Below are positions 41,935 through 53,664 of a stretch of DNA of 64,000 bases, piece after piece; the stretch's first letter is position 1; each line of letters starts with the position of its first letter. The stretch lies in the sequence record NC_048047.1. One strand, written 5' to 3'. Made by a program: the position numbers and the translations under genes. The notes beneath the pieces were generated by a model. It was not told where the DNA came from, ran no database searches, and saw nothing but the letters and a program-made list of their open reading frames with translations.

Positions 41935-43075
41935 ACCCAAGCGCAAGGGCCGCCCGCCCGGTGAGAGCAACCTGAAGCGCCGCGTCGCCGGCAAGCTCTA
42001 CGGCACGCGCGAGTTCAAGAACCTGATGATGGAGACCATCGCCAAAATCCCCAAGGGCGAGCCGACCGTCGCGGGCATCATCAAGCTGTGGGGCGACCCG
42101 GACTGGGACACCCCGCCGGCCAAGCTCGACCTGCGCTCCTGCATCGACCGCTATACCCGCCAGGGCACGCTGGTGCCCATGGAGCGAGGCGTCTACGAGG
42201 TCAGCGAAATCCCACGCCTGACGCCCTCGCATGATTTCCAGCTTCTGGCCGAGCGCGCCATCCGCGCCAACGGCGGCTTCATGAAGGCCAAGGACCTGCG
42301 CCGCGCCCTGGGCTATAGCTCCGAGGACGCCCGCAACACCACCCTGTGGAAGTCCCTGCGCATGGAGGGCTCGAAGGTCCGGCGCGACTGCTTCAAGCTC
42401 TACCTCTACAACCTGCCCGAAGACGATCTGCGCAACCTCGTGCTCCAGGGACGCTGGGCCTTGCCCTACTTCCGGGGCGTCTATCTGGGCATGGCCCCCA
42501 TGCCGGCCGATCCCAGCGCCCGGCCCTGGCGCGCCCTGCTCGATCAGCATCTCTACAGCGTCGGCGCCGCCCTGGCCCAGGCGCGCGAAGCCAATGGCGT
42601 CGACATCGAAGAGGTCCTGTCCTTCCCCGAGATCGTCGCCGCGCTCGATGTCGCCCGCCTGCGCAATCCCGCCCGCCTGTCCAATCGCGATCTGGCCCGG
42701 CAGGTCGAGGAGATGCCCGACAACGTCATCATCGTGGGCCAGCGCGAGACCCGCACCGGCCGGCTCGTCGACATCAAGGTCACCACGCCGCGCGACGAGT
42801 CCGATCCCAAGCACCTCCTGATCCGCGACGTGCGCCTGGATCAACTGGTCCGCCTGGAGAACCCGCCGGCCGATCCGCTGAGCGAGTTCCTCGACTATCA
42901 CGACTATGCCAGCCTCGGCGCGGACTTCTTCGAGGCCTGGGCCAAGGCCTTCAATGTCGATCCGATCGCCCTGTCGTGGGGGCGCCTTGGTCTGCGTCCC
43001 GACAGCGGCTGGCATGTGGGCGCCGGCGATGGGGATGAAAGCGGCTGGGCCGATGACGCCCAGGATGAGGACTAA
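41927..43075 (+). CDS. multi-HTH DNA-binding protein (candidate replication initiator or regulator)
   Basis: RYTRQGTLVPMERGVYEV wing; GGFMKAKDLRRALGYS HTH; VGAALAQAREANGVDIEEV XRE-like helix. Confidence 0.55.
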   Translation: MTEPKRKGRPPGESNLKRRVAGKLYGTREFKNLMMETIAKIPKGEPTVAGIIKLWGDPDWDTPPAKLDLRSCIDRYTRQGTLVPMERGVYEVSEIPRLTPSHDFQLLAERAIRANGGFMKAKDLRRALGYSSEDARNTTLWKSLRMEGSKVRRDCFKLYLYNLPEDDLRNLVLQGRWALPYFRGVYLGMAPMPADPSARPWRALLDQHLYSVGAALAQAREANGVDIEEVLSFPEIVAALDVARLRNPARLSNRDLARQVEEMPDNVIIVGQRETRTGRLVDIKVTTPRDESDPKHLLIRDVRLDQLVRLENPPADPLSEFLDYHDYASLGADFFEAWAKAFNVDPIALSWGRLGLRPDSGWHVGAGDGDESGWADDAQDED

Positions 43076-43204
43076 GGCGCGCCTCACCATCAAAAATCAC
43101 CAAGCCAATTGGTAGGGTGATTTAATGGTATAGATAAAGAACAGGCCTGGAACCCTTGCGCTGCTTGGGTTCTGGGCCTGAGTGCTGCCTGGGCCGCCGC
43201 CCGA

Positions 43205-43427
43205 GGGCACAGGCTTGCCTACTACAGCTAACGCATAATAAGGCTGCTTTAATAGGGTGCATAAAGAATAGCTCCCATGAGGATGCAGGACCTCCCCTGG
43301 AAAAGCTACCGCATAATAAGGCTGCTTATATGCACATCATAAAGAACACCCACAGACAGGGCACATAGGGCTTGCCCATAAAAGCTACTGCATAATAAGG
43401 TAGCTTATATGCATACCATAAAGAACA
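43205..43427. repeat. three degenerate ~45-bp direct repeats, 78-79 bp period, in an AT-rich island
   Basis: AGCTAxxGCATAATAAGG...CATAAAGAA with cores at 43233, 43311 and 43390. Confidence 0.85.
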
Positions 43428-44005
43428 CATGGCTTGCCATGCACATAACCATTCTCCCTCACTATTCTCACCACTAACACTTTTATTATCTATATAAATA
43501 ACCTTATTTTCCATCTATTGGGGTAGTAAAGAAGGAATCTAGTAGATAAGAGAGTAGAAAGGGTTGTGCAGCGTCTGGTTGTATGGTTGCCAGATCGAAT
43601 GGGCGACAGGGAGACACAGATGAGGCCCGCTCCGCGTAGGACGACACTGAAGGGTCGGTTTGAACCTCCATCCGAATGATCACTCTGAGTGCTCTGGACG
43701 GTTCGAGGATAAACCCCGCGACCGGCGAATGGACGACCCCGGAGAAACAATCGCGACTGACGAAGGAGGGCGCAGCCCGAGTGAGGCAGGACGCGTAGCA
43801 AACCTATGGACCTTGAGCTTCCAACCTACGGACCTCCTGGCGTAGCGCCGCTCGAAAATGAGAGGCCCGACCGGCGATCGAGGCGCAGCCGAGGAGACGG
43901 GATGGGAAAGGATTCATGACCCGATGTCGCGTTTCTTGACGTGTGTCACGTGACGTGTCATGAAGGTCCTCGAAGATGGTTAATGCGCCATCCAGGACCC
44001 ACCCG

Positions 44006-44731
44006 ATGTTCACCTCCATCCGCGCCGCTGATCCGCAAGACCCCCGTCCTCAACTGACGGACGATGCGACGCTGTGCGCCTCGGTCGCCACGACCCTGCC
44101 GCTCTATGCGGCCCTGGCCAAGAAGCGCGGCTCCGACCTCACCGACGACCAGATCGGCTTCGCCCTCGAAGTGGCCCTCAAGAAGGCCCGTTACTCGGAG
44201 GGCGACTGGGCCTGGAACGCCGCGCGTCTGATGGAGGACGCCTTCGGTCTGCCGGGCGATGGCAAGCTCCTGGCCCTGGTCGAGACGACCATCGCCCGGC
44301 TGAAGATCGAATGGGAGAGCCTGACCCGCGCCTGGGTCATGCGCACCGGCTATCGCATCCCCGCCGCGCTCGACGAAAAGGTCGAGGCCGTGGTCAATGG
44401 GGCGCCGACGGTGGGCAAGATCGTCGGCGTCTCCCGCGCGCTCGGCGTGGCCTACATGGACAACGAGGCCCACACCGAGACCTACCGCATCGACGGCGAG
44501 GACATCATCGCCAACTACACCCAAGGCCGGTTCGCGCCCGAGACCCCGATCCTGGGCTCGCGCTATGAGAACGCGCCGGCGCTGGCCGCCGCCGCGCAAG
44601 GCACGATGGGCAAGGCCCGCAAGCTGCCGGCCGCCGCGTCTGACGACGCCGCCTCGCGCCAGCAACGCATCGCCGACGCCTACAAGACCGGCAGCTTCGG
44701 CGCTGATCTCGACGGGCCGGGAGCGGCCTGA
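44006..44731 (+). CDS. hypothetical protein
   Basis: strong codon bias; TTGACG at 43936 upstream. Confidence 0.75.
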   Translation: MFTSIRAADPQDPRPQLTDDATLCASVATTLPLYAALAKKRGSDLTDDQIGFALEVALKKARYSEGDWAWNAARLMEDAFGLPGDGKLLALVETTIARLKIEWESLTRAWVMRTGYRIPAALDEKVEAVVNGAPTVGKIVGVSRALGVAYMDNEAHTETYRIDGEDIIANYTQGRFAPETPILGSRYENAPALAAAAQGTMGKARKLPAAASDDAASRQQRIADAYKTGSFGADLDGPGAA

Positions 44732-46919
44732 TGCTCGGGACCGTGCTGATGGTCGTCTACTGCGTCGCGATCGTCGCCCTCTTCGGCGTCCTCCTGGCGC
44801 TGGCCTTCACCCCGTACCCGGCCCACCGTGATTGGTTCCTGGACTGATGATCGACACCGACACCTTCCTGCTGAGCATGGGCTTGATGGCCATCGTCGTC
44901 ATCGGCCTGACCCTACTGATCCGCGCCGCCGACGCCCGCTACGACTATGAGCGAGGTGTCAAGTGATCGGCCTGGGGTTCCTAGCCGCCCTGGCGTTCGG
45001 CGCCTTTTTCATGTGGCTGCTCGGCTTTGATTTCGAGTTCACCGGACCGGACTGCGCCTGATGCTGACCGGCTTCCTCATCACCCTGGGCGTCTTCGCCC
45101 TGATCTGCGTCGGAGCCGTTGCCGCCTTCTGGGTGGGCGTCATGTTCGTCATCTCCACGGCGATGTCGATCCTCACCTCGGGCCGCGCCGGCTACACCGA
45201 CGCCAGCGCCTATACACCCAAGCCCTGGCCCGCCCGGCTGCATCTGGAAACCCTCTGATGGACACCCTTGGCCTCATCCTGCTGCTGATCGTCGGGGTGC
45301 TGATCCTGACCATCGCGCTCGGCTTCTGGGCCACCATCGCCATGGTCAACATCCTGGCCAAGGAGGTGCGCGTCGTCGTCGCCGACCAGCGCCATCTGCC
45401 CAAGGAGGCCTCGTGATCAACGCCCTGCTGATCCTGGCCATCCTCTGCCTGGGGCCGTTCGCCCTGCTGGCGGCGATCCTGCTGTTCTCGGCGCTGTTTT
45501 CCTGGGCCGCCTTCCGCCACGCCGACGTGCAGAAGACCCTGACCGTCAAGGTGGGGCCTTAAGGTGGAAATCCTGGTGCTGATGGGCGCGATCTTCGGCG
45601 TGGCCTTCGTCCTTTTGTTGGGCGCGGCGGCGATCTATCTGGCCCTGCTGCTGGGCGCGCTGATCCTGGGCTTTCTCGCCCTCCTCCTTTCGGGGTTCGC
45701 CATGATGCTCGACGCCATCGTCGACATGGTGCGCGACACCCTCCGCCGGTGAGCATCGTCACGGCCCTGATGGCCGCGTCCCTGATCGCCATCCTCTACC
45801 ACCTCAAGCCGGGGTCTCACCGATGAGCACCTTCCTGCAAGTTACCCTGGTGCTGATCGGCGTCCTCCTGGTCATCGGCCTGTCCTGGGCCATGGGCCAT
45901 TTCGAGGAGTTCATGCGCGGCCAACTGGGCGCGTCGGAGCTTCCGGCCCACGACCTGCCCGACGAGAAAAACGAGAGCGGCGAGCCCGAGTTCGGATCGG
46001 AGCGCCCGTGACCGAGATCATCTTCCCCGCCTGTGTGGCGCTGGGTCTGGTCATCGCGATCTTCCGCCTGATCGACCACTACGACGGGACCTGAAGGTCA
46101 TGAGCCTGCTTCTCGTCGCCGCCTTCATCGTCTGGCTGGCCTATGCCAGCGCCCGCAACCTCAGGGTCTGATCCCATGACTTTCATCGCTCTCGTCCTGG
46201 CCGCCTCGCTGGTCAACACCGGCGCCCAGATCACCAAGGCCCTCGGCGACTACGAAGAAGGCGCCGTGGCCTGGGGCGTGCTGCTGGCGATCCTCCAGGC
46301 GATCGCACTGGTGGTGCTGTTCAACCTCAAGACCGGAGCCGCCTGATGCTCGCCGCCGCCCTGACCATCACCTTGGACCTCGTCGTCCTGACCATCCTCA
46401 CCGCCTACGCGGTGAAGATTTCCCGCAGCGAGCAAAAGCCCGGCTCGATCACCACCGGCACGCTCTACGTGTCGATCCTGGCCTGGGCCGCCTTCTTCTT
46501 CGTCGACTTCCTGGCCATCTACAAGGCGCCCGCATGACCGGCTTCGTCGTCACCCTGCTGATCGCCGCCATCGTCTACCACGTCCTGATCGTGCGCGACG
46601 CCTGCTGCGAGTTCGAAGGCGAAGAGGGCAAGCAGGTCTTCCACGGCGTGACGGCCGGCATCCTGGTCATGCTGGAGATCATGGCCGTGGGCGCGCTGTG
46701 GAGCGGCAAGCTGTGATCGCCTCGATCCTGATCGACCTCCTGGCCATCGCCGCCGGCGTCTATGGCGCGACCACCGGCGCCGTGCAAGCCATGGAATCCT
46801 CGCTCGATCGCGAGCCCGACCTGCTCGTCGCGCTGTGGGTTTTCATCAGCCTGGGCTCGGCCGCCATCGCCAGTCTCGGCGCGATCGACCTGTTCATGAG
46901 GCTGTTGCCCGCGTCATGA
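44731..46919 (+). CDS. array of 15 tiny hydrophobic membrane-protein genes
   Basis: 44731-44847, 44847-44966, 44963-45061, 45061-45258, 45258-45416, 45413-45562, 45564-45752, 45749-45826, 45823-46011, 46008-46094, 46100-46171, 46176-46346, 46346-46537, 46534-46716, 46713-46919; each has 1-2 TM helices; most overlap the previous stop. Confidence 0.75.
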
Positions 46920-47434
46920 CCCGTATCCTGGGCGTGGACCCTGGCGTCAAGGGCGCCCTGGCCCTGCTCGACACCAACAACTGGACCATCGCCATCCGCG
47001 ACATGCCCCTGGAGATAGGCACCAAGGGCAAGGAGAAGGTCTCCGCGCGCGGCCTGCTCGATGCGATCGCCGCCGCCAAGCCCGACGCGTCCTTCCTCGA
47101 AGAGGTCTTCGCCTCGCCGCAGATGGGCGTGACCTCGGCCTTCTCGTTCGGGGACGGCTTTGGCTGCACCCGCACCGCGATCCTGGCCTATGGCTGCGTT
47201 CTGTGGCCGATCCGCCCCCAGGTGTGGAAGGCGGCCATGAAGGTCCCCAAGGACAAGAAGCAGGCCACCACCCGCGCCAGCCAGCTAATCCCCGCCGCCC
47301 ACAGCCTGTTCTTTGGCCCGCGCGGCGGCGCCTTCGATGGCCGGGCCGAGGCGGCCTTGCTCGCCCTCTACGGCTGCTTCCACCTCAAATCCACGCCACC
47401 CAGACCCCTCAAGGTCGTCGAGTTCCCTGAGTAG
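46916..47434 (+). CDS. ruvC: RuvC-like Holliday junction resolvase
   Basis: ILGVDPGVKGALA, FLEEV, SAFSFGDGFG, PQVWK, DGRAEAALLA. Confidence 0.85.
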   Translation: MTRILGVDPGVKGALALLDTNNWTIAIRDMPLEIGTKGKEKVSARGLLDAIAAAKPDASFLEEVFASPQMGVTSAFSFGDGFGCTRTAILAYGCVLWPIRPQVWKAAMKVPKDKKQATTRASQLIPAAHSLFFGPRGGAFDGRAEAALLALYGCFHLKSTPPRPLKVVEFPE

Positions 47435-47442
47435 CACCCAGT

Positions 47443-48499
47443 ATGACCTTTTTCACCGTCCAGCCCTACCGGGTCCGTCAGCGCAAGACGCGGCTGAAGA
47501 TCACCAGCGCGCTCGACCGCGTCGACCTGATGCCGCGCCCGACCGCCACCGTCCACCCGTTCGCGCCCAAGAAAAAGCGCGCCCGCCTGACGGGGCCATA
47601 CCAGCCGGTGGCTGGCCATACTCAGCCATACCGCGTCATCGGCGGGGTCCACCCGGTCTATGACGAGTGCTTCGCCACCGCCGACCACGTCTACGAGGAG
47701 CCGCGTGGTCCGCAGATCGTCCCGACCGGCATCCTCGACGAACGCGGCGTCATGCTCTGCCGCGTCACCATGCCGATCAAGCAGCAATTGGGCATCAACA
47801 CCGGCGGCAACGCCTGGACGGGTGAGTTCGAGGACGAGGTCGAGGCCCTGATGCCGGCCGACATGCTGCGCATCTCCACCGGCGGTGGCGGGGTCAGCGA
47901 GATCGACGCCTCGGAATTCGACGAAGACTTCGAAGACGAGGACGAGGACTGATGGCCTATTTCAACGACCGCGACTGGCAGATGGCTGGCCTGATGCTGG
48001 CCCTGGGCATGGTCACCCTGTTCGCCATCATCGGCGCGCTAATCGCCGCCGGCCTCGCCCTGCCGTTCATGCTCTGGTGGCACGACTTCTCGGTGCTGCC
48101 GACCTTCCTGGCCGTGGGCGCGGGGGCCGGCGTGGTCTTCACCGGCGTGGCCCTGCGCCCCTGGGATATGCTGGCATGACCCGCGCCACCGACGAGATGC
48201 TGAAGCTGGCGGCCGAGATCGAGGAGGCCGAGGCGCGCCTGTCGGCCGCCACCGATTACTGGGCCGATCGCCAGAAGGACTATCTCAACGCCACCGAGGA
48301 GACCGACGACGCCAAGGTCCTGGCCGACATCCAGTTGAAGGCCCTGGTCGCCTATGAGCAGGTCGTCGACGCCATCGCCTTCAGGGGCGTCATGACCGTC
48401 CAGCTTCGCCGGCTCCAGAAGGCGCGCAGCGACCAGATCACCCGCCGAGGCCAAGCCCGCAAGCGCATGGGCGGCGCCGACGATCGCGAGGCCGCATAA
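47443..48499 (+). CDS. hypothetical (47443-47952, acidic tail), membrane protein (47952-48179), coiled-coil protein (48176-48499)
   Basis: coupled ORFs. Confidence 0.7.
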
Positions 48500-49222
48500 A
48501 TGCCGGTGCTCGCCAACGCCAAGCAGGAGCTTTACTGCAAGCACCGCGCCAACGGCTTTGTCCCCAAGAAGGCCGCCCAGGCCGCAGGCTACGCCACCGG
48601 CAGCGCCGTCTACCAGGGCCTGGAGGAAGACGCCGACGTCGTCGCCCGCATCCATGAACTGATCGACGAGCGCAATGAGGCCAAGGCCGCGCGCATGGCC
48701 GCCGCCCAGGCCAAGGCCCTGGCCGAAGGACACACCGTCGGCACCATGACCGGCGTCTCCCACGCCTGGGTCATCGAGCAGTTGAAGATGAACGCCGAGG
48801 ACGCGCGCGAGAGCGGCGACTTCAAGGAAAGCAACGCCTCCCTGAAGCTGATCGGCGAAGCCCTAGGCATGTGGGGCGGCGGGCTCGCCGGCAAGGACGG
48901 CGCAGGACCGGGCCTGCTCAACGGTTCGGGCGATGGCCCGATGCTGATCGACCTGGACTCGATCGACAAGCTGATCGGCGTCACCGACCAGTTTCACCAG
49001 ATCGCCCTGGCTCCGCCCGGCGAACTGTCCGTCGAGGACCGCGACATCGCCATGAACCTGATCGCCGGCCAAGGCTCCAAGAATCTGGCGGGCGATCGCC
49101 AGCTTTCCACCGGCAGTGAGACCGACGTGGCTCTGCAACTGCTCGACGCCCTCGACGATGGCGAGAGCGAAATCCCGGCGCGCGAGATCATCCCGCCGCC
49201 GCCTTACCAAGACGAGGACTAA
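48500..49222 (+). CDS. terS: terminase small subunit
   Basis: N-terminal KQELYCKHRANG...KAAQAAGYA HTH typical of TerS; upstream of TerL. Confidence 0.7.
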   Translation: MPVLANAKQELYCKHRANGFVPKKAAQAAGYATGSAVYQGLEEDADVVARIHELIDERNEAKAARMAAAQAKALAEGHTVGTMTGVSHAWVIEQLKMNAEDARESGDFKESNASLKLIGEALGMWGGGLAGKDGAGPGLLNGSGDGPMLIDLDSIDKLIGVTDQFHQIALAPPGELSVEDRDIAMNLIAGQGSKNLAGDRQLSTGSETDVALQLLDALDDGESEIPAREIIPPPPYQDED

Positions 49223-49615
49223 GACCCATGGGCCAGCCCAACTTCGCTCCCAACTCGCCGCTGGTCGGCTTCAAGAAGTTCCTGCTCGGCGGCACCGCCG
49301 TCTACCGCGTCGCCATGCAGGAGACCACCGTCAAGTCGGCCTATGGTCCGATCCAGGCCTGGGGCGTGCTGGGCTGATGCGCGCGCGCCTCGCCCTGCTG
49401 CTGGCCGGCGTCACCGGCGCCCTGGTCCTGTCGCTCACCCGTCCGGTCAGCGCCAGGACCAAGCTGATCTCCCTGGCGGCGCGTCCGCCGTGGGTGGGCA
49501 GAAAGCTCTCCGTTCCCGTCTAAGCCGACCCCTCAAGGCCCGCCCGATCAACGAGGCGGGCCAATCCCATTTTCGATGACGAGTAGCCCTTTTCCAACCT
49601 GGACTGCTCAATCCT

Positions 49616-52432
49616 GTGACCCTCGCTTCCCATAAGACCGCCCTCTCGCCCTATCCCCATGAGGAGCGCGCCAAGCGCCGCGCCGGTGTGCGCCGTATGC
49701 GCAAGCTCGCCGAGGACATCCGGGCCGATCACGTCCGGGACCGCGAGCAGGACCCCCAGCGCGCGGCTGCCGCCACCGCCATCACCGGCGTGACCGAGCC
49801 CCATCACCAAGTCGCCCTGCTGGAGCAGATCGCCGACAAAATCCAGACCGAGCACCTGGACAAGCTTTATCCGCTGGCCCGTGACGACTTCTCCGCCTTC
49901 TGCGAGGTCATCAGCCCCGAGGAGCCGCCCGAGAGCCCCTGGCACATCTGGCTGACCAACTTCCTGCAAGAGGTCGAGCTTTCGCCCGATCTCAACAAGG
50001 TGGTGCTCAACGTGCCGCCCGGCCACGCCAAGCCCCTGCACGAGGACACCCTGGTGCTGATGGGCGATGGCGCCTATCGGCCGCTCAAGGACATCCAGGT
50101 CGGCGACCGCGTCTGGACCCACGCCGGCCGCGCCCGTCCCGTCACCGCCGTCCACGAGCAGGGCAAGCTCTCCACCGTCGAGATCGTCACCGAGGCGGGC
50201 CGCATTGTGCGCGCCGCCCCCGACCACCCGTTCCTGGTCAAGCTGGGGACCAAGGACGACGGGACCCCGATCGCCGAATGGATCAACGCCGGCGACCTGC
50301 GGCCGGGCATGCCCGTGGTGATATCGGCCCACAAGCCGCCGAGCGTCGAGCACCGTCACTATGACGGCGACCACACCACGGCCGAGACCTACAACAAGCC
50401 CCTGCGCCGGGCCGAGGCCCTGGGCTACATGGCGCTGGGCGGGGCGCTGCACTGGCAGAAGTCCAAGACCCAGGTCACCCCCTCGCCCGACTTCCGTCTG
50501 TCGACCCACAAGCGCGCGCTGATGAAGCACATCGTCAAGCTGGTCAAGACCGGCCTTGGCCACCACATCAGCGTCTGCAAGGTCGCCTCCCAGAACACCT
50601 TCGTCGCCCGCCTGGGCGTCAAGGGTTTCCGTGATCTCAACGCCGGCGACTGGTTCACCTACGAGCCGGAGAAGCGCCGCGTCCCGCCGTGCATCTTCAC
50701 CGCCAGCAAGGACGAGATCGCCGCCTTCCTGGGCGCGGCCTTCTCCCTGCGCGGCGAGGTCATCCGCCGGCTGCGGGGCAAGAACCTGCGCCTCTACCAT
50801 CGCTCTATGGACCTGCTTCTGGACGTGCAGAAGTTGTGCGCCACGCTAGGGGCCGCAGGAAGCCTCGACAGGGGCGATCCTGACTTCGGGGGCCGACCCT
50901 GCTTGAACCTCGACTTCGCCGCTGTGGCAGCCCTCCAGGCGGCCGGAGTGAGCTTCGATGGCGAGACCGACACCGACCTCGTCAATCAGCCGCCCTTCAC
51001 CATGCTGATCCCGCGTCCGAGCGACACCGACGCGGTCGTCTCGGTGCTGCCGGCCAAGAAGGCCCGCTGCCTGTGCCTGACCGTCGAGGAGGACCACAGC
51101 TTCACCGCCGAGACCCTGGTGGTCAAGAACTCCACCTATGCCTCGCGCCTGTTCGTGGCGTGGCGCCTGGGGCGTGACCCCAACCAGCGCATCATCGGCG
51201 GCGGCCACAGTCAGAACTTCGTCGAGAACGAGTTCTCCTCGAAAATCCGCAACATCGTCACCTCGCCGGAATTCCAGCGCGTCTTCCCTGGCATCACCGT
51301 CGACCACCAGACCAACGCCAAGCAGCAGTGGGCGATCGCCGGCTACAAGGGCCAGTACGTGGCGCGCGGCGTGGGCCAGGGCATCCACGGTTTCCGCGCC
51401 ACCTTCATCTGCGTCGATGACCCCTACTCCAAGATCGAGGACGCCAACAGCCCGGTTCACCGGCGCAAGGTCGAGCAGTGGTTCGACGCCGACATTGGTT
51501 CGCGCGCCCTGCCCAACTGCAAGACCTTCCTGATCATGACCCGCTTCCATGGTGAGGATTTGACTAATCACCTGGAGGAGATGAACAAGGTCCTCCCCGA
51601 CAATGCAAAGTGGAAGATCGTTACTGTTCCGGCCATCTGCTTTGATGAAGAAACAGACCTTCTAGGCCGCAAAATCGGTGAGTTTTTGTGGGATTACTAT
51701 CCGTTGTCCTACTTCGTTGACAAGAAGATTCAGTTTGGATTTCTGGGTTTCGCCCTCACCTACCAACAGGTGTCGTCTGCCGCAAATCCCGACAACATCG
51801 CCAGCAAGTTCAACTTCTACGATTCCCTGCCCCACGAGTCGCCTGAAGTTAAGGCCCGCGCCCCTCGCGACCAGTTCGGCAGGCCGCAGATTAACGAGGG
51901 TGATTTTTACCGGCGCACCATCGTCTCGGTCGATACCGCCTCCAAGACCACCGAACGCGCCGACTACACGGTCGTGCAGGTCTGGCGCGAGGATTTCCGG
52001 GGCAAGCACTACCTCGTCCACCAGGACCGCCGGAAGGTCGAGTTCAACGACCTGATCTCGATGATCGAGGCGCCGGCCATCAAGTACCGGGCCGACCAAA
52101 TCCTCGTCGAGGACAAGGGCTCGGGCACCCAGTACCTGCAAAACCGGGGCTCGACCGACAATCAGAAGCGTCAGGCGCCCTGTCCGCTGGTGGCGGTCAA
52201 TCCTGGCGTGGCCGGCAAGAGCTTCCGTTTTGACGGTGTCACGCCCATGATCGAGGGCGGCGATGTCTGGCTGCCCAAGGATGCGCCCTGGATCGAGCAG
52301 CTTCTGGTCGAGATCGGCCAGTTCCCCGACAGCGCTCACGATGACCAAGTCGACGCCATGAGCCAGTACCTCAACCACGCCAAGAAGAACCGCACCCGCT
52401 ACGGCAGTCGCAAGATCACCAAGCACACGTAA
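49616..52432 (+). CDS. terL: terminase large subunit containing an intein
   Basis: Walker A PPGHAK/ST split by the intein; GVGQGIHGFRA, ICVDDP Walker B, LIMTRFH, nuclease SVDTA, LVEDKGSG, HDDQVDAMSQ. Confidence 0.95.
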   Translation: MTLASHKTALSPYPHEERAKRRAGVRRMRKLAEDIRADHVRDREQDPQRAAAATAITGVTEPHHQVALLEQIADKIQTEHLDKLYPLARDDFSAFCEVISPEEPPESPWHIWLTNFLQEVELSPDLNKVVLNVPPGHAKPLHEDTLVLMGDGAYRPLKDIQVGDRVWTHAGRARPVTAVHEQGKLSTVEIVTEAGRIVRAAPDHPFLVKLGTKDDGTPIAEWINAGDLRPGMPVVISAHKPPSVEHRHYDGDHTTAETYNKPLRRAEALGYMALGGALHWQKSKTQVTPSPDFRLSTHKRALMKHIVKLVKTGLGHHISVCKVASQNTFVARLGVKGFRDLNAGDWFTYEPEKRRVPPCIFTASKDEIAAFLGAAFSLRGEVIRRLRGKNLRLYHRSMDLLLDVQKLCATLGAAGSLDRGDPDFGGRPCLNLDFAAVAALQAAGVSFDGETDTDLVNQPPFTMLIPRPSDTDAVVSVLPAKKARCLCLTVEEDHSFTAETLVVKNSTYASRLFVAWRLGRDPNQRIIGGGHSQNFVENEFSSKIRNIVTSPEFQRVFPGITVDHQTNAKQQWAIAGYKGQYVARGVGQGIHGFRATFICVDDPYSKIEDANSPVHRRKVEQWFDADIGSRALPNCKTFLIMTRFHGEDLTNHLEEMNKVLPDNAKWKIVTVPAICFDEETDLLGRKIGEFLWDYYPLSYFVDKKIQFGFLGFALTYQQVSSAANPDNIASKFNFYDSLPHESPEVKARAPRDQFGRPQINEGDFYRRTIVSVDTASKTTERADYTVVQVWREDFRGKHYLVHQDRRKVEFNDLISMIEAPAIKYRADQILVEDKGSGTQYLQNRGSTDNQKRQAPCPLVAVNPGVAGKSFRFDGVTPMIEGGDVWLPKDAPWIEQLLVEIGQFPDSAHDDQVDAMSQYLNHAKKNRTRYGSRKITKHT
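50033..51130 (+). mobile_element. 366-aa intein (Pro1 start, block-F Cys, class-3-like) with degenerate LAGLIDADG region
   Basis: PLHEDTLVLMGDG...IQVGDRV (block A), APDHPF (block B), CLCLTVEEDHSF (block F), VVKN/S end. Confidence 0.9.
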
Positions 52433-53286: not shown

Positions 53287-53664
53287 CGCTTCCAGCCCAG
53301 CCGGAAATTCACATCCCCATGCTCCTTTCCCTCACCAGCCTGATCGGCGCCCTGCTGATCGCCGCCGTCGCGGTCTTCGCCCTGTGCGGCGAGATCGACT
53401 GGTGCATTGACGGCCAGTGCGGCTCCTGGCGCGGCCCCTTTGCCCCGCCCGGTCCTAGTTCATCGCTTTCGTGACAGGTCTTGATTTCCTTGGGCTTTTT
53501 GGCCTGCTGTCACGATTCAAAAGGTTTCACGCGTGCCCCGAGCCCTGAAAATCCACCCAAAATGGGCGATTTTGATCGATCTCTGGCTCTGGGCGGCGGT
53601 CCGCGTCTACGCATGGGTCCACAATGCGAGGCCGGAGGCCGGTGCGCCACCCACCAAGTCGTGA

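Follow-up and report, generated by a model that had tools for sequence, protein, structure and literature searches.

An array of fifteen consecutive genes for predicted membrane microproteins upstream of ruvC in Caulobacter phage CcrBL9

Arrays of small genes for putative membrane proteins, with functions as yet unexplained, have been described in Arthrobacter phages of Clusters AM and AU (e.g. Circum and Gordon), Rhodococcus phages of Cluster CC (Pepy6 and Poco6) and Gordonia phages of Cluster DJ, where they follow the tail genes in the central part of the genome and stood out in comparative genomics as an oddity; 14 of ~37 genes in Circum are of this kind, and the proteins have one to a few, at most five, transmembrane (TM) segments (PMC5513430, PMC13313380). 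The subject of this study is an array of 15 consecutive open reading frames (ORFs) in Caulobacter phage CcrBL9 (MH588546 / NC_048047), a jumbo phage of 322 kb belonging to Bertelyvirus (Dolichocephalovirinae). The array was analysed within a stretch of 64,000 nucleotides of NC_048047.1, here called the window (record coordinate = window coordinate + 248000); blastn matched the region to CcrBL9 at 100% identity. Actinobacteriophages with such arrays have genomes of roughly 50-60 kb and Gram-positive hosts. Like them, CcrBL9 has many neighbouring small genes with predicted membrane-spanning segments. However, in contrast to the actinobacteriophage arrays, which are interspersed with other genes, the CcrBL9 run is unbroken (15/15) and almost fully overlapping, its products are only 23-68 aa long, its host is Gram-negative, and it is flanked by a gp204-like gene and by ruvC, ahead of the terminase genes. 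The comparison rests on the published descriptions, and a search of PHROGs gave no match. By this analogy, the CcrBL9 array appears to be a further instance of a little-understood kind of locus.

Two other groups of proteins invite comparison. Large lytic phages of the T4 superfamily have hyperplastic regions that encode small inner-membrane proteins such as Imm and Sp, and the known examples act in superinfection exclusion. Like these plastic regions, the CcrBL9 array occupies a fixed slot between conserved core genes and consists of small, fast-evolving, lineage-specific ORFs, many of them for predicted membrane proteins. In contrast, the CcrBL9 proteins have no sequence or profile similarity to the T4-type proteins, the likeness to Imm and Sp stops at size and predicted inner-membrane character, and the density of TM proteins is, to our knowledge, much above that of T4-type regions. 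Bacteria also encode single-helix regulators of 30-60 aa that bind larger membrane complexes; their genes occur singly, beside or apart from those of their partners, and not in arrays. The single-helix members of the CcrBL9 array are similar to these in size, in their single N-terminal helix and in their short, charged, predicted-cytoplasmic tail, but differ in being encoded in an array, and no homology was found. A partner-binding mode of action is, by analogy, plausible for them. A literature search, which did not cover the CcrBL9 genome paper (Wilson and Ely 2019), found no paper describing the locus.

Coding signal and membrane architecture of the fifteen ORFs

The 15 ORFs tile window positions 44731-46919 (record 292731-294919) on the plus strand (Table 1) and are, with high confidence, genuine protein-coding genes. 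RefSeq annotates 11 of them as hypothetical proteins (gp203 to gp193) and omits ORFs 3, 8, 10 and 11. The best coding signal in this GC-rich genome is GC content at the third codon position (GC3), which is 0.82-0.95 in each ORF, with 0.34-0.53 at the second position (GC2). Third-position GC was highest in the called frame in 106 of 108 sliding 45-nt windows, and the stop-to-stop extensions upstream of ORFs 2, 5, 6, 12 and 15 have low GC3 (0.40-0.60; 0.53 for ORF 5). Therefore, the reading frame truly changes at every junction. Thirteen of the 16 junctions from gp204 to ruvC are overlaps of 1 nt (TGATG) or 4 nt ((A/G)TGA), comprising 11 of the 14 internal junctions and both outer ones (1 nt between the gp204 stop and the ORF 1 start; 4 nt between the ORF 15 stop and the ruvC start), and the remaining three leave 1, 5 and 4 nt between the genes. 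Such overlaps are enriched relative to the rest of the window (13/16 versus 41/105; Fisher p=0.002). Shine-Dalgarno sequences of the GGAG or GAGG type lie upstream of about half of the array starts, and ORF 6 is preceded by a strong AAGGAGG located within ORF 5.

A first-pass annotation of the window, made from the letters alone, had reported 15 ORFs of 23-68 aa at these positions, most of them joined by TGATG or (A/G)TGA overlaps, and had argued from their density and coupling that they are real. The coordinates, lengths and junction types were reproduced here, and the GC3 signal, the frame switching and the selection on the frames described below argue for the same conclusion, in an arrangement that would suit translational coupling. 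Its statement that six of the ORFs were absent from its ORF track does not hold for RefSeq NC_048047, the annotation used for comparison here instead of that track, which omits four.

All 15 encoded proteins have a maximum Kyte-Doolittle hydropathy over 17 residues (KD17max) of at least 2.1, in agreement with the earlier description of each as dominated by one or two hydrophobic helices. In all 15 the hydrophobic helix starts at residue 1-4, with neither Lys nor Arg at the N-terminus, and most single-helix members carry their basic residues after the helix; the positive-inside rule therefore predicts insertion with the N-terminus out and the C-terminus in. ORFs 12-15 have two hydrophobic segments and a charged loop and look like two-helix hairpins, and the long hydrophobic stretches of ORFs 4-7 may also contain two helices. 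Over the array, ~23 helices are predicted in 722 aa. Asp, Glu, His or Asn residues occur inside several helices, and small-xxx-small motifs are frequent. TM-positive genes make up 31 of the 121 plus-strand genes called in the window; none of 200,000 shuffles gave a run of 15 such genes (longest run, 10), and the analytic bound is ~6e-9. When both strands of record positions 100001-322272 were scanned (222 kb, beyond the structural module at 22-100 kb), the array was the sole cluster of at least three adjacent small TM ORFs and held 15 of the 27 small TM ORFs of the plus strand.

Conservation, turnover and distribution of the array genes

The slot was compared in the Bertelyvirus phages CcrSC (SC), RB23, BL47, C2 and J4, and in all five the gp204 homologue and ruvC flank an array of small TM genes. 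The gene counts are 15 in CcrBL9 (BL9), 13 in SC, 12 in C2 and in J4, and 10 by gene caller in RB23 and in BL47; the RB23 total is 11 with gp483, an annotated gene that the caller missed. Twelve BL9 genes have clear SC orthologues with intact frames. Differences between BL9 and SC are distributed over codon positions 1, 2 and 3 as 72:44:110 (p=5e-7), and the pooled ratio of nonsynonymous to synonymous substitution rates (dN/dS) of the 12 genes is 0.39, with a dS of 0.284 that is equal to that of the flanking genes (0.25-0.31). Flanking genes have dN/dS values against SC of 0.08 (ruvC), 0.09 (terS) and 0.23 (gp204). The most constrained array members are the four ORFs omitted from RefSeq (pooled dN/dS 0.16), two of which (ORFs 10 and 11) have been annotated in RB23, C2 and J4. 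Reading frames are thus intact in relatives and under purifying selection, so that the loss of frame conservation which the first-pass annotation had set as a ground for rejecting its reading was not observed.

More distant relationships were scored against shuffled sequences (z), which corrects for hydrophobic composition. ORFs 2, 4, 9, 10 and 11 have syntenic counterparts in the RB23 and C2 clades (z 9-23), and ORFs 6 and 12 have weaker ones (z 5.5-6.8). These seven or so families form a core that is found in the same order in the BL9/SC, RB23/BL47 and C2/J4 clades. The orthologues of ORF 2 (SC ORF 1, RB23 ORF 1 and C2 ORF 1; z 10-29) have a common juxtamembrane motif, and its dN/dS against SC is 0.57. 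ORF 4 resembles C2 ORF 2 at the syntenic position (z 9.2), and the whole gene is deleted in SC. ORF 6 differs from its SC counterpart by 8 synonymous changes only (dN=0) and has a weak syntenic match in RB23 ORF 3 and C2 ORF 3 (z 5.5-6.8). ORF 9 has orthologues in SC (z 46, with an in-frame length difference of 18 nt) and in RB23 and C2 (z 16-17). Identity between clades is 68% between ORF 10 and RB23 ORF 7 or C2 ORF 7 (dN/dS 0.11-0.35) and 83% between ORF 11 and C2 ORF 9 or J4 ORF 9 (dN/dS 0.13-0.23). ORF 12 has a weak syntenic match in C2 ORF 11 (z 6.5).

Of the remaining genes, ORF 3 has an SC orthologue with an intact frame (dN/dS 0.19) and weak similarity to RB23 ORF 5 and C2 ORF 5 (z 6-7). 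ORFs 5, 7 and 14 were found in BL9 and SC, with an SC orthologue that is 90% identical for ORF 5 (present in these two phages only), has a dN/dS of 0.61 for ORF 7, and is 68% identical with a dN/dS of 0.41 for ORF 14. The SC orthologue of ORF 8 differs by 1 residue (dN/dS 0.11), and that of ORF 15 is 64% identical (dN/dS 0.61). ORF 13 is intact in BL9 only, and ORF 1 is found only in BL9. Within any one phage, no pair of array proteins scored above z 6.2 against shuffles, and blastn detected no DNA-level duplication, whether inside the array or across the scanned 222 kb. Therefore, the array consists of unrelated families and is not a tandem expansion, which bears out its initial description as diverse TM peptides that share no obvious sequence repeat.

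Alignment of BL9 with SC indicates how membership changes. ORFs 1 and 4 each differ between the two phages by an exact whole-gene unit, bounded by a repeated CTGATG stop/start junction, and ORF 1 is likewise missing as a unit from the RB23/C2 clade. In SC, one in-frame deletion fuses the front of ORF 12 to the end of ORF 13, so that a single hybrid ORF is the SC orthologue of ORF 12 and retains just the C-terminal end of ORF 13. Similarly, one deletion in RB23 relative to C2 removes one gene (C2 ORF 8) and keeps the ORF 11 orthologue as an in-frame fusion. Turnover is thus by whole-gene units, non-core genes being gained, lost or fused at the junctions, and the surviving deletions keep downstream frames open. 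SC also has an extra gene, preceded by a short duplicated piece left over from the 5' end of ruvC. This gene encodes a protein of 56-63 aa that is rich in Ala and Gly in its N-terminal part and has a helix at the C-terminus (a tail-anchored layout). Among the Bertelyvirus phages examined, CcrBL9 alone lacks a tail-anchored gene immediately ahead of ruvC. Colossusvirus has one as well, and the Bertelyvirus protein (SC, RB23, C2) resembles the 56-aa product of the gene that precedes ruvC in Colossus and CcrPW (z 5-7).

Outside the genus, the slot was inspected in 11 relatives (Colossus, CcrPW, Rogue, Bajun, Marchewka, Kikimora, one 279-kb IMG/VR contig and four further metagenomic contigs) and contains only 0-4 soluble proteins, with, in Colossus and CcrPW, the additional 56-aa tail-anchored protein. 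The array is thus a Bertelyvirus innovation in a conserved slot. Searches of Pfam, PHROGs and NCBIfam with all 15 proteins returned nothing at E<=0.1 beyond weak noise far below the cut-offs; in particular, no holin family and no family of known superinfection-exclusion proteins was matched. PDB sequence searches with ORFs 7, 14 and 15 found no relative (at E<=10 for ORFs 14 and 15). ORF 9 was found in BL9 and CcrSC only in a word-indexed search of 5.8 billion proteins, ORF 15 retrieved only its own cluster in an exhaustive HMMER search of 1.84 billion representatives, and an exact look-up of ORF 6 returned only the two isolate genomes; for ORFs 9 and 15, these searches thus gave no homologue outside Bertelyvirus. 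Two specific comparisons were also made. ORF 15 was considered as an F-type ATPase c-subunit-like hairpin, and the idea was not supported: neither a Pfam match at E<=0.1 nor a PDB sequence match at E<=10 was obtained. The peptides have the size of type I toxins. Their genes lie in a coupled operon, unlike type I loci, and for a toxin-like RNA partner Rfam gave only two sub-threshold matches (window 42500-47500) and no promoter-like site was found on the minus strand inside the array.

Genomic and transcriptional context

The window is a long string of plus-strand genes of ~65% GC. Rightward transcription in the record begins near 192 kb, at a divergent site, and extends to the gene for the large terminase subunit (297.6-300.4 kb). 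A 22-kb terminal repeat begins within terL at window position 52013 (record 300013; RefSeq repeat_region feature), so the array lies ~5 kb from the repeat boundary; in phiCbK, the terminal repeat has likewise been reported to start inside the large terminase gene. The array was initially described as lying directly upstream of ruvC, terS and terL. This is true of ruvC, which adjoins the array and encodes a RuvC-like resolvase; however, three genes separate ruvC from terS and three more separate terS from terL.

Table 1. Array ORFs of CcrBL9 and flanking genes (window coordinates)
Feature	Position	Strand	Description	Remarks
gp204 (HOU02_gp204)	44006..44731	+	241 aa, soluble, 5' flank	RefSeq
ORF 1	44731..44847	+	38 aa, one N-terminal TM helix	gp203 in RefSeq; GC3 0.92, KD17max 2.95
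ORF 2	44847..44966	+	39 aa, one TM helix, basic/acidic C-tail, core family	GC3 0.88
ORF 3	44963..45061	+	32 aa, one TM helix	not in RefSeq; GC3 0.82
ORF 4	45061..45258	+	65 aa, long N-terminal hydrophobic stretch (1-2 helices), 26-aa C-tail, core family	GC3 0.89
ORF 5	45258..45416	+	52 aa, N-terminal TM, basic C-tail	GC3 0.94
ORF 6	45413..45562	+	49 aa, N-terminal TM, core family	GC3 0.94
ORF 7	45564..45752	+	62 aa, 54-residue hydrophobic stretch (~2 helices)	GC3 0.90, KD17max 2.99
ORF 8	45749..45826	+	25 aa, one TM helix	not in RefSeq; GC3 0.88
ORF 9	45823..46011	+	62 aa, N-terminal TM, acidic 36-aa C-tail, core family	orthologues in SC, RB23, C2
ORF 10	46008..46094	+	28 aa, one TM helix, best-conserved core family	not in RefSeq; orthologues RB23 ORF 7/C2 ORF 7
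ORF 11	46100..46171	+	23 aa, one TM helix, core family	not in RefSeq; orthologues C2 ORF 9/J4 ORF 9
ORF 12	46176..46346	+	56 aa, two-helix hairpin (predicted), core family	GC3 0.88
ORF 13	46346..46537	+	63 aa, two-helix hairpin (predicted), basic loop	GC3 0.94
ORF 14	46534..46716	+	60 aa, two-helix hairpin (predicted), acidic loop, His/Glu in helices	GC3 0.95
ORF 15	46713..46919	+	68 aa, two-helix hairpin (predicted), Asp in both helices	GC3 0.88
ruvC (gp192)	46916..47434	+	RuvC-like Holliday junction resolvase, 3' flank	RefSeq product name; PHROG 1770, E=2.6e-23
terS (gp188)	48500..49222	+	terminase small subunit, downstream in the same co-oriented gene string	RefSeq
terL (gp184)	49616..52432	+	terminase large subunit	RefSeq

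Several features point to a single transcription unit. An AT-rich gap of ~900 bp (window 43077-43975; GC ~0.53 versus 0.65) separates gp205 from gp204, relatives have a gap of 560-1000 bp at the same place, including those in other genera, and the Colossus annotation places a rho-independent terminator behind the upstream gene, where the gap begins. Inside the array, a scan for sigma-70 promoters and terminators found nothing convincing, with only two weak terminator-like stems of 5 pairs. From these observations, we infer one unit that comprises gp204, the array, ruvC and the terminase genes. The gap itself contains three 49-nt direct repeats (43223-43271, 43301-43349 and 43380-43428) at a spacing of 78-79 nt. 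The 17-nt core of the repeats is confined to this site within the window and absent from every relative compared, and it was therefore rejected as a general promoter motif; the repeats could be a promoter, an iteron or a packaging-related element. No credible RNA was detected by Rfam in 42500-47500, and none for the repeats.

The first gene of this putative unit, gp204, belongs to PHROG 11118 (function unknown; E=6e-32) and has homologues at the same position in all Dolichocephalovirinae examined. Its AlphaFold2 model (mean predicted local distance difference test score, pLDDT, 69.6; residues 10-170 mostly >75) is a predicted four-helix bundle followed by a five-stranded, small Tudor/SH3-like beta-barrel. 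A PDB sequence search gave no match, and the best structural matches of the model in the PDB were Tudor/PWWP-type barrels at a non-significant E of ~0.02, with none at E<=0.001. gp204 was therefore uninformative as a key to the role of the operon and was set aside. In BL47, the gp204 homologue is the RB23 gene except for one single-base indel; because of this frameshift, which may be real or a sequencing error, GenBank annotates two coding sequences there, the second of which crosses the first two microprotein genes in another frame.

Small TM proteins are also encoded elsewhere in the genome. gp190 (window 47952-48179, between ruvC and terS) encodes 75 aa with 2-3 helices and is kept in SC (z 45) and RB23 (z 11), with positional equivalents in other genera that are soluble and unrelated. 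Further small TM ORFs are present in the same putative operon at 49377-49523 (48 aa, between terS and terL) and 53319-53474. Outside the window, the minus-strand arm has a cluster annotated as TerD-like tellurium-resistance proteins, with a membrane protein (record NC_048047 177130-180689).

Possible roles of the array

Overall, the array genes are real, conserved within Bertelyvirus, orphan and turning over, with the membrane architecture described above. The reading favoured here, to which about an even chance is given, is that the array is an accessory cassette specific to Bertelyvirus, that its inner-membrane microproteins act mostly as separate modulators of the host membrane, and that it turns over by whole-gene gain and loss. 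Transcription would start in the AT-rich gap upstream of gp204, and the array genes would be translated serially by termination-reinitiation at the overlapping stop/start junctions, so that the cassette would be co-expressed with the late DNA-processing genes (ruvC and terminase). In the inner membrane of the host, the products would adopt the predicted N-out/C-in orientation. By analogy with known small membrane proteins, they may then act on separate inner-membrane components of the host, for instance in the exclusion of other phages or in interference with envelope machines or membrane-bound defences, and would not form one fixed complex. The turnover, the orphan status and the relaxed but real constraint match what the plastic regions of large lytic phages show. 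Several points weigh against this reading. Co-transcription, coupling, topology and any function are predictions, and since none of the proteins has homology to a characterised protein, function is argued by analogy. The fixed order of the core set would be equally expected of a small complex, and dN/dS values of 0.4-0.6 for several members are compatible with weak constraint. In addition, start choices favoured starts near the preceding stop, which inflated the overlap counts, although the comparison set has the same bias.

The main competing explanations concern a complex or a role in lysis. The first-pass annotation had proposed a battery of TM peptides that would target host membrane complexes (pilus or flagellum receptors, membrane-bound defences, the proton-motive force or lysis timing) and had offered a stoichiometric heteromeric membrane assembly as the other possibility. 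A complex of all 15 members is unlikely because of the presence/absence differences among close relatives (15, 13, 11 and 12 genes in BL9, SC, RB23 and C2, respectively), and this part of the proposal is weakened; a smaller core complex is possible. One heteromeric inner-membrane assembly built entirely of microproteins, formed by the conserved core and possibly the tail-anchored protein, is a considerably less probable reading. Coupled translation could set its proportions, and it could be a platform tied to DNA resolution and packaging or a novel pore. The order of about seven families in three clades, the conserved juxtamembrane C-terminal motifs, the polar or charged residues (Asp, Glu, His, Asn) within several helices, the many small-xxx-small motifs and the tight coupling of the array to ruvC are consistent with such an assembly, but the membership varies (ORFs 1, 4 and 13 between BL9 and SC; BL9 without the tail-anchored protein; RB23 without C2 ORF 8), and core members diverge at very unequal rates, from 28% to 83% identity between clades. 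Its most specific form would be a phage-built inner-membrane machine of core members only (ORFs 2, 4, 6, 9, 10, 11 and 12, and the tail-anchored protein of relatives), made solely of microproteins of 23-65 aa and kept in fixed proportion by translation coupled with the resolvase and terminase; late DNA processing on a membrane platform, pore formation of a new kind or phage exclusion are examples of what it might do, and this form is considered improbable. Similarly doubtful is that the array, especially the 56-68-aa proteins of ORFs 12-15, is an accessory lysis-timing set (holin, antiholin or pinholin-like) expressed with the late packaging genes. The small size and two TM helices of ORFs 12-15 are like those of class II holins and pinholins (classes per Gill et al. 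2012), and the downstream ruvC, terS and terL make a late operon context likely. However, no endolysin or spanin was found among the neighbouring genes, and no array protein matched a holin family. The annotated endolysin gp521 and its adjacent small genes are ~168 kb away (record 123730-125401), a location that matches the lysis cassette described for phiCbK-like phages, which follows the structural module (Gill et al. 2012). The array is thus not the lysis cassette, and a lysis-timing role for the two-helix members is possible, though without the gene neighbourhood that defines such genes.

The remaining explanations question whether the peptides matter as such. They could have little function of their own, either as young proto-genes in a hyperplastic slot or as frames kept open for the passage of ribosomes to ruvC and terminase. 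This is also judged improbable. Orphan status (no homologues of ORFs 9 and 15 outside the genus in the searches made), fast turnover with dN 2-5 times that of the flanking genes, and deletions that preserve the downstream frame, which polarity alone could select, all suit such proto-genes or spacers; in contrast, dN/dS of 0-0.2 for ORFs 3, 6, 8, 10 and 11, residues conserved across clades, GC3 as high as in core genes and a membrane architecture that is common to all 15 and that a spacer would not need are not expected of them. Finally, the ORFs could be the frameshifted pieces of one decayed multi-pass membrane protein gene, or could have arisen by chance in GC-rich DNA, as might be suspected from ~23 predicted helices in alternating frames and from the many long open frames of such DNA. 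The first of these was rejected because start codons lie at the stops in 13 of 16 junctions, SC, RB23 and C2 share the gene boundaries and have indels of whole-gene units, no piece matches a transporter or other family, and no relative has an intact long gene in the slot. Chance ORFs were rejected on the GC3 frame signal, which alternative-frame ORFs lack, on the substitution pattern and dN/dS, which show selection on each frame, and on the absence of a run of 15 from the 200,000 shuffles; either origin is considered barely credible.

No part of phage genomes is less well understood than the small membrane proteins, which gene callers often miss; in CcrBL9, four conserved genes of 23-32 aa are missing from the reference annotation. 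The array offers a clean and compact case, with fifteen unrelated TM microproteins in what appears to be one operon, in a defined insertion slot, and the sister genomes already separate core from dispensable members. The host, Caulobacter, is experimentally tractable, and its envelope machines are well known. The array would be a ready panel of natural probes if its peptides act on membrane complexes of the host or assemble with one another. Otherwise, the locus documents a plastic jumbo-phage slot that gains and sheds membrane-peptide genes as whole units at overlapping stop/start junctions.

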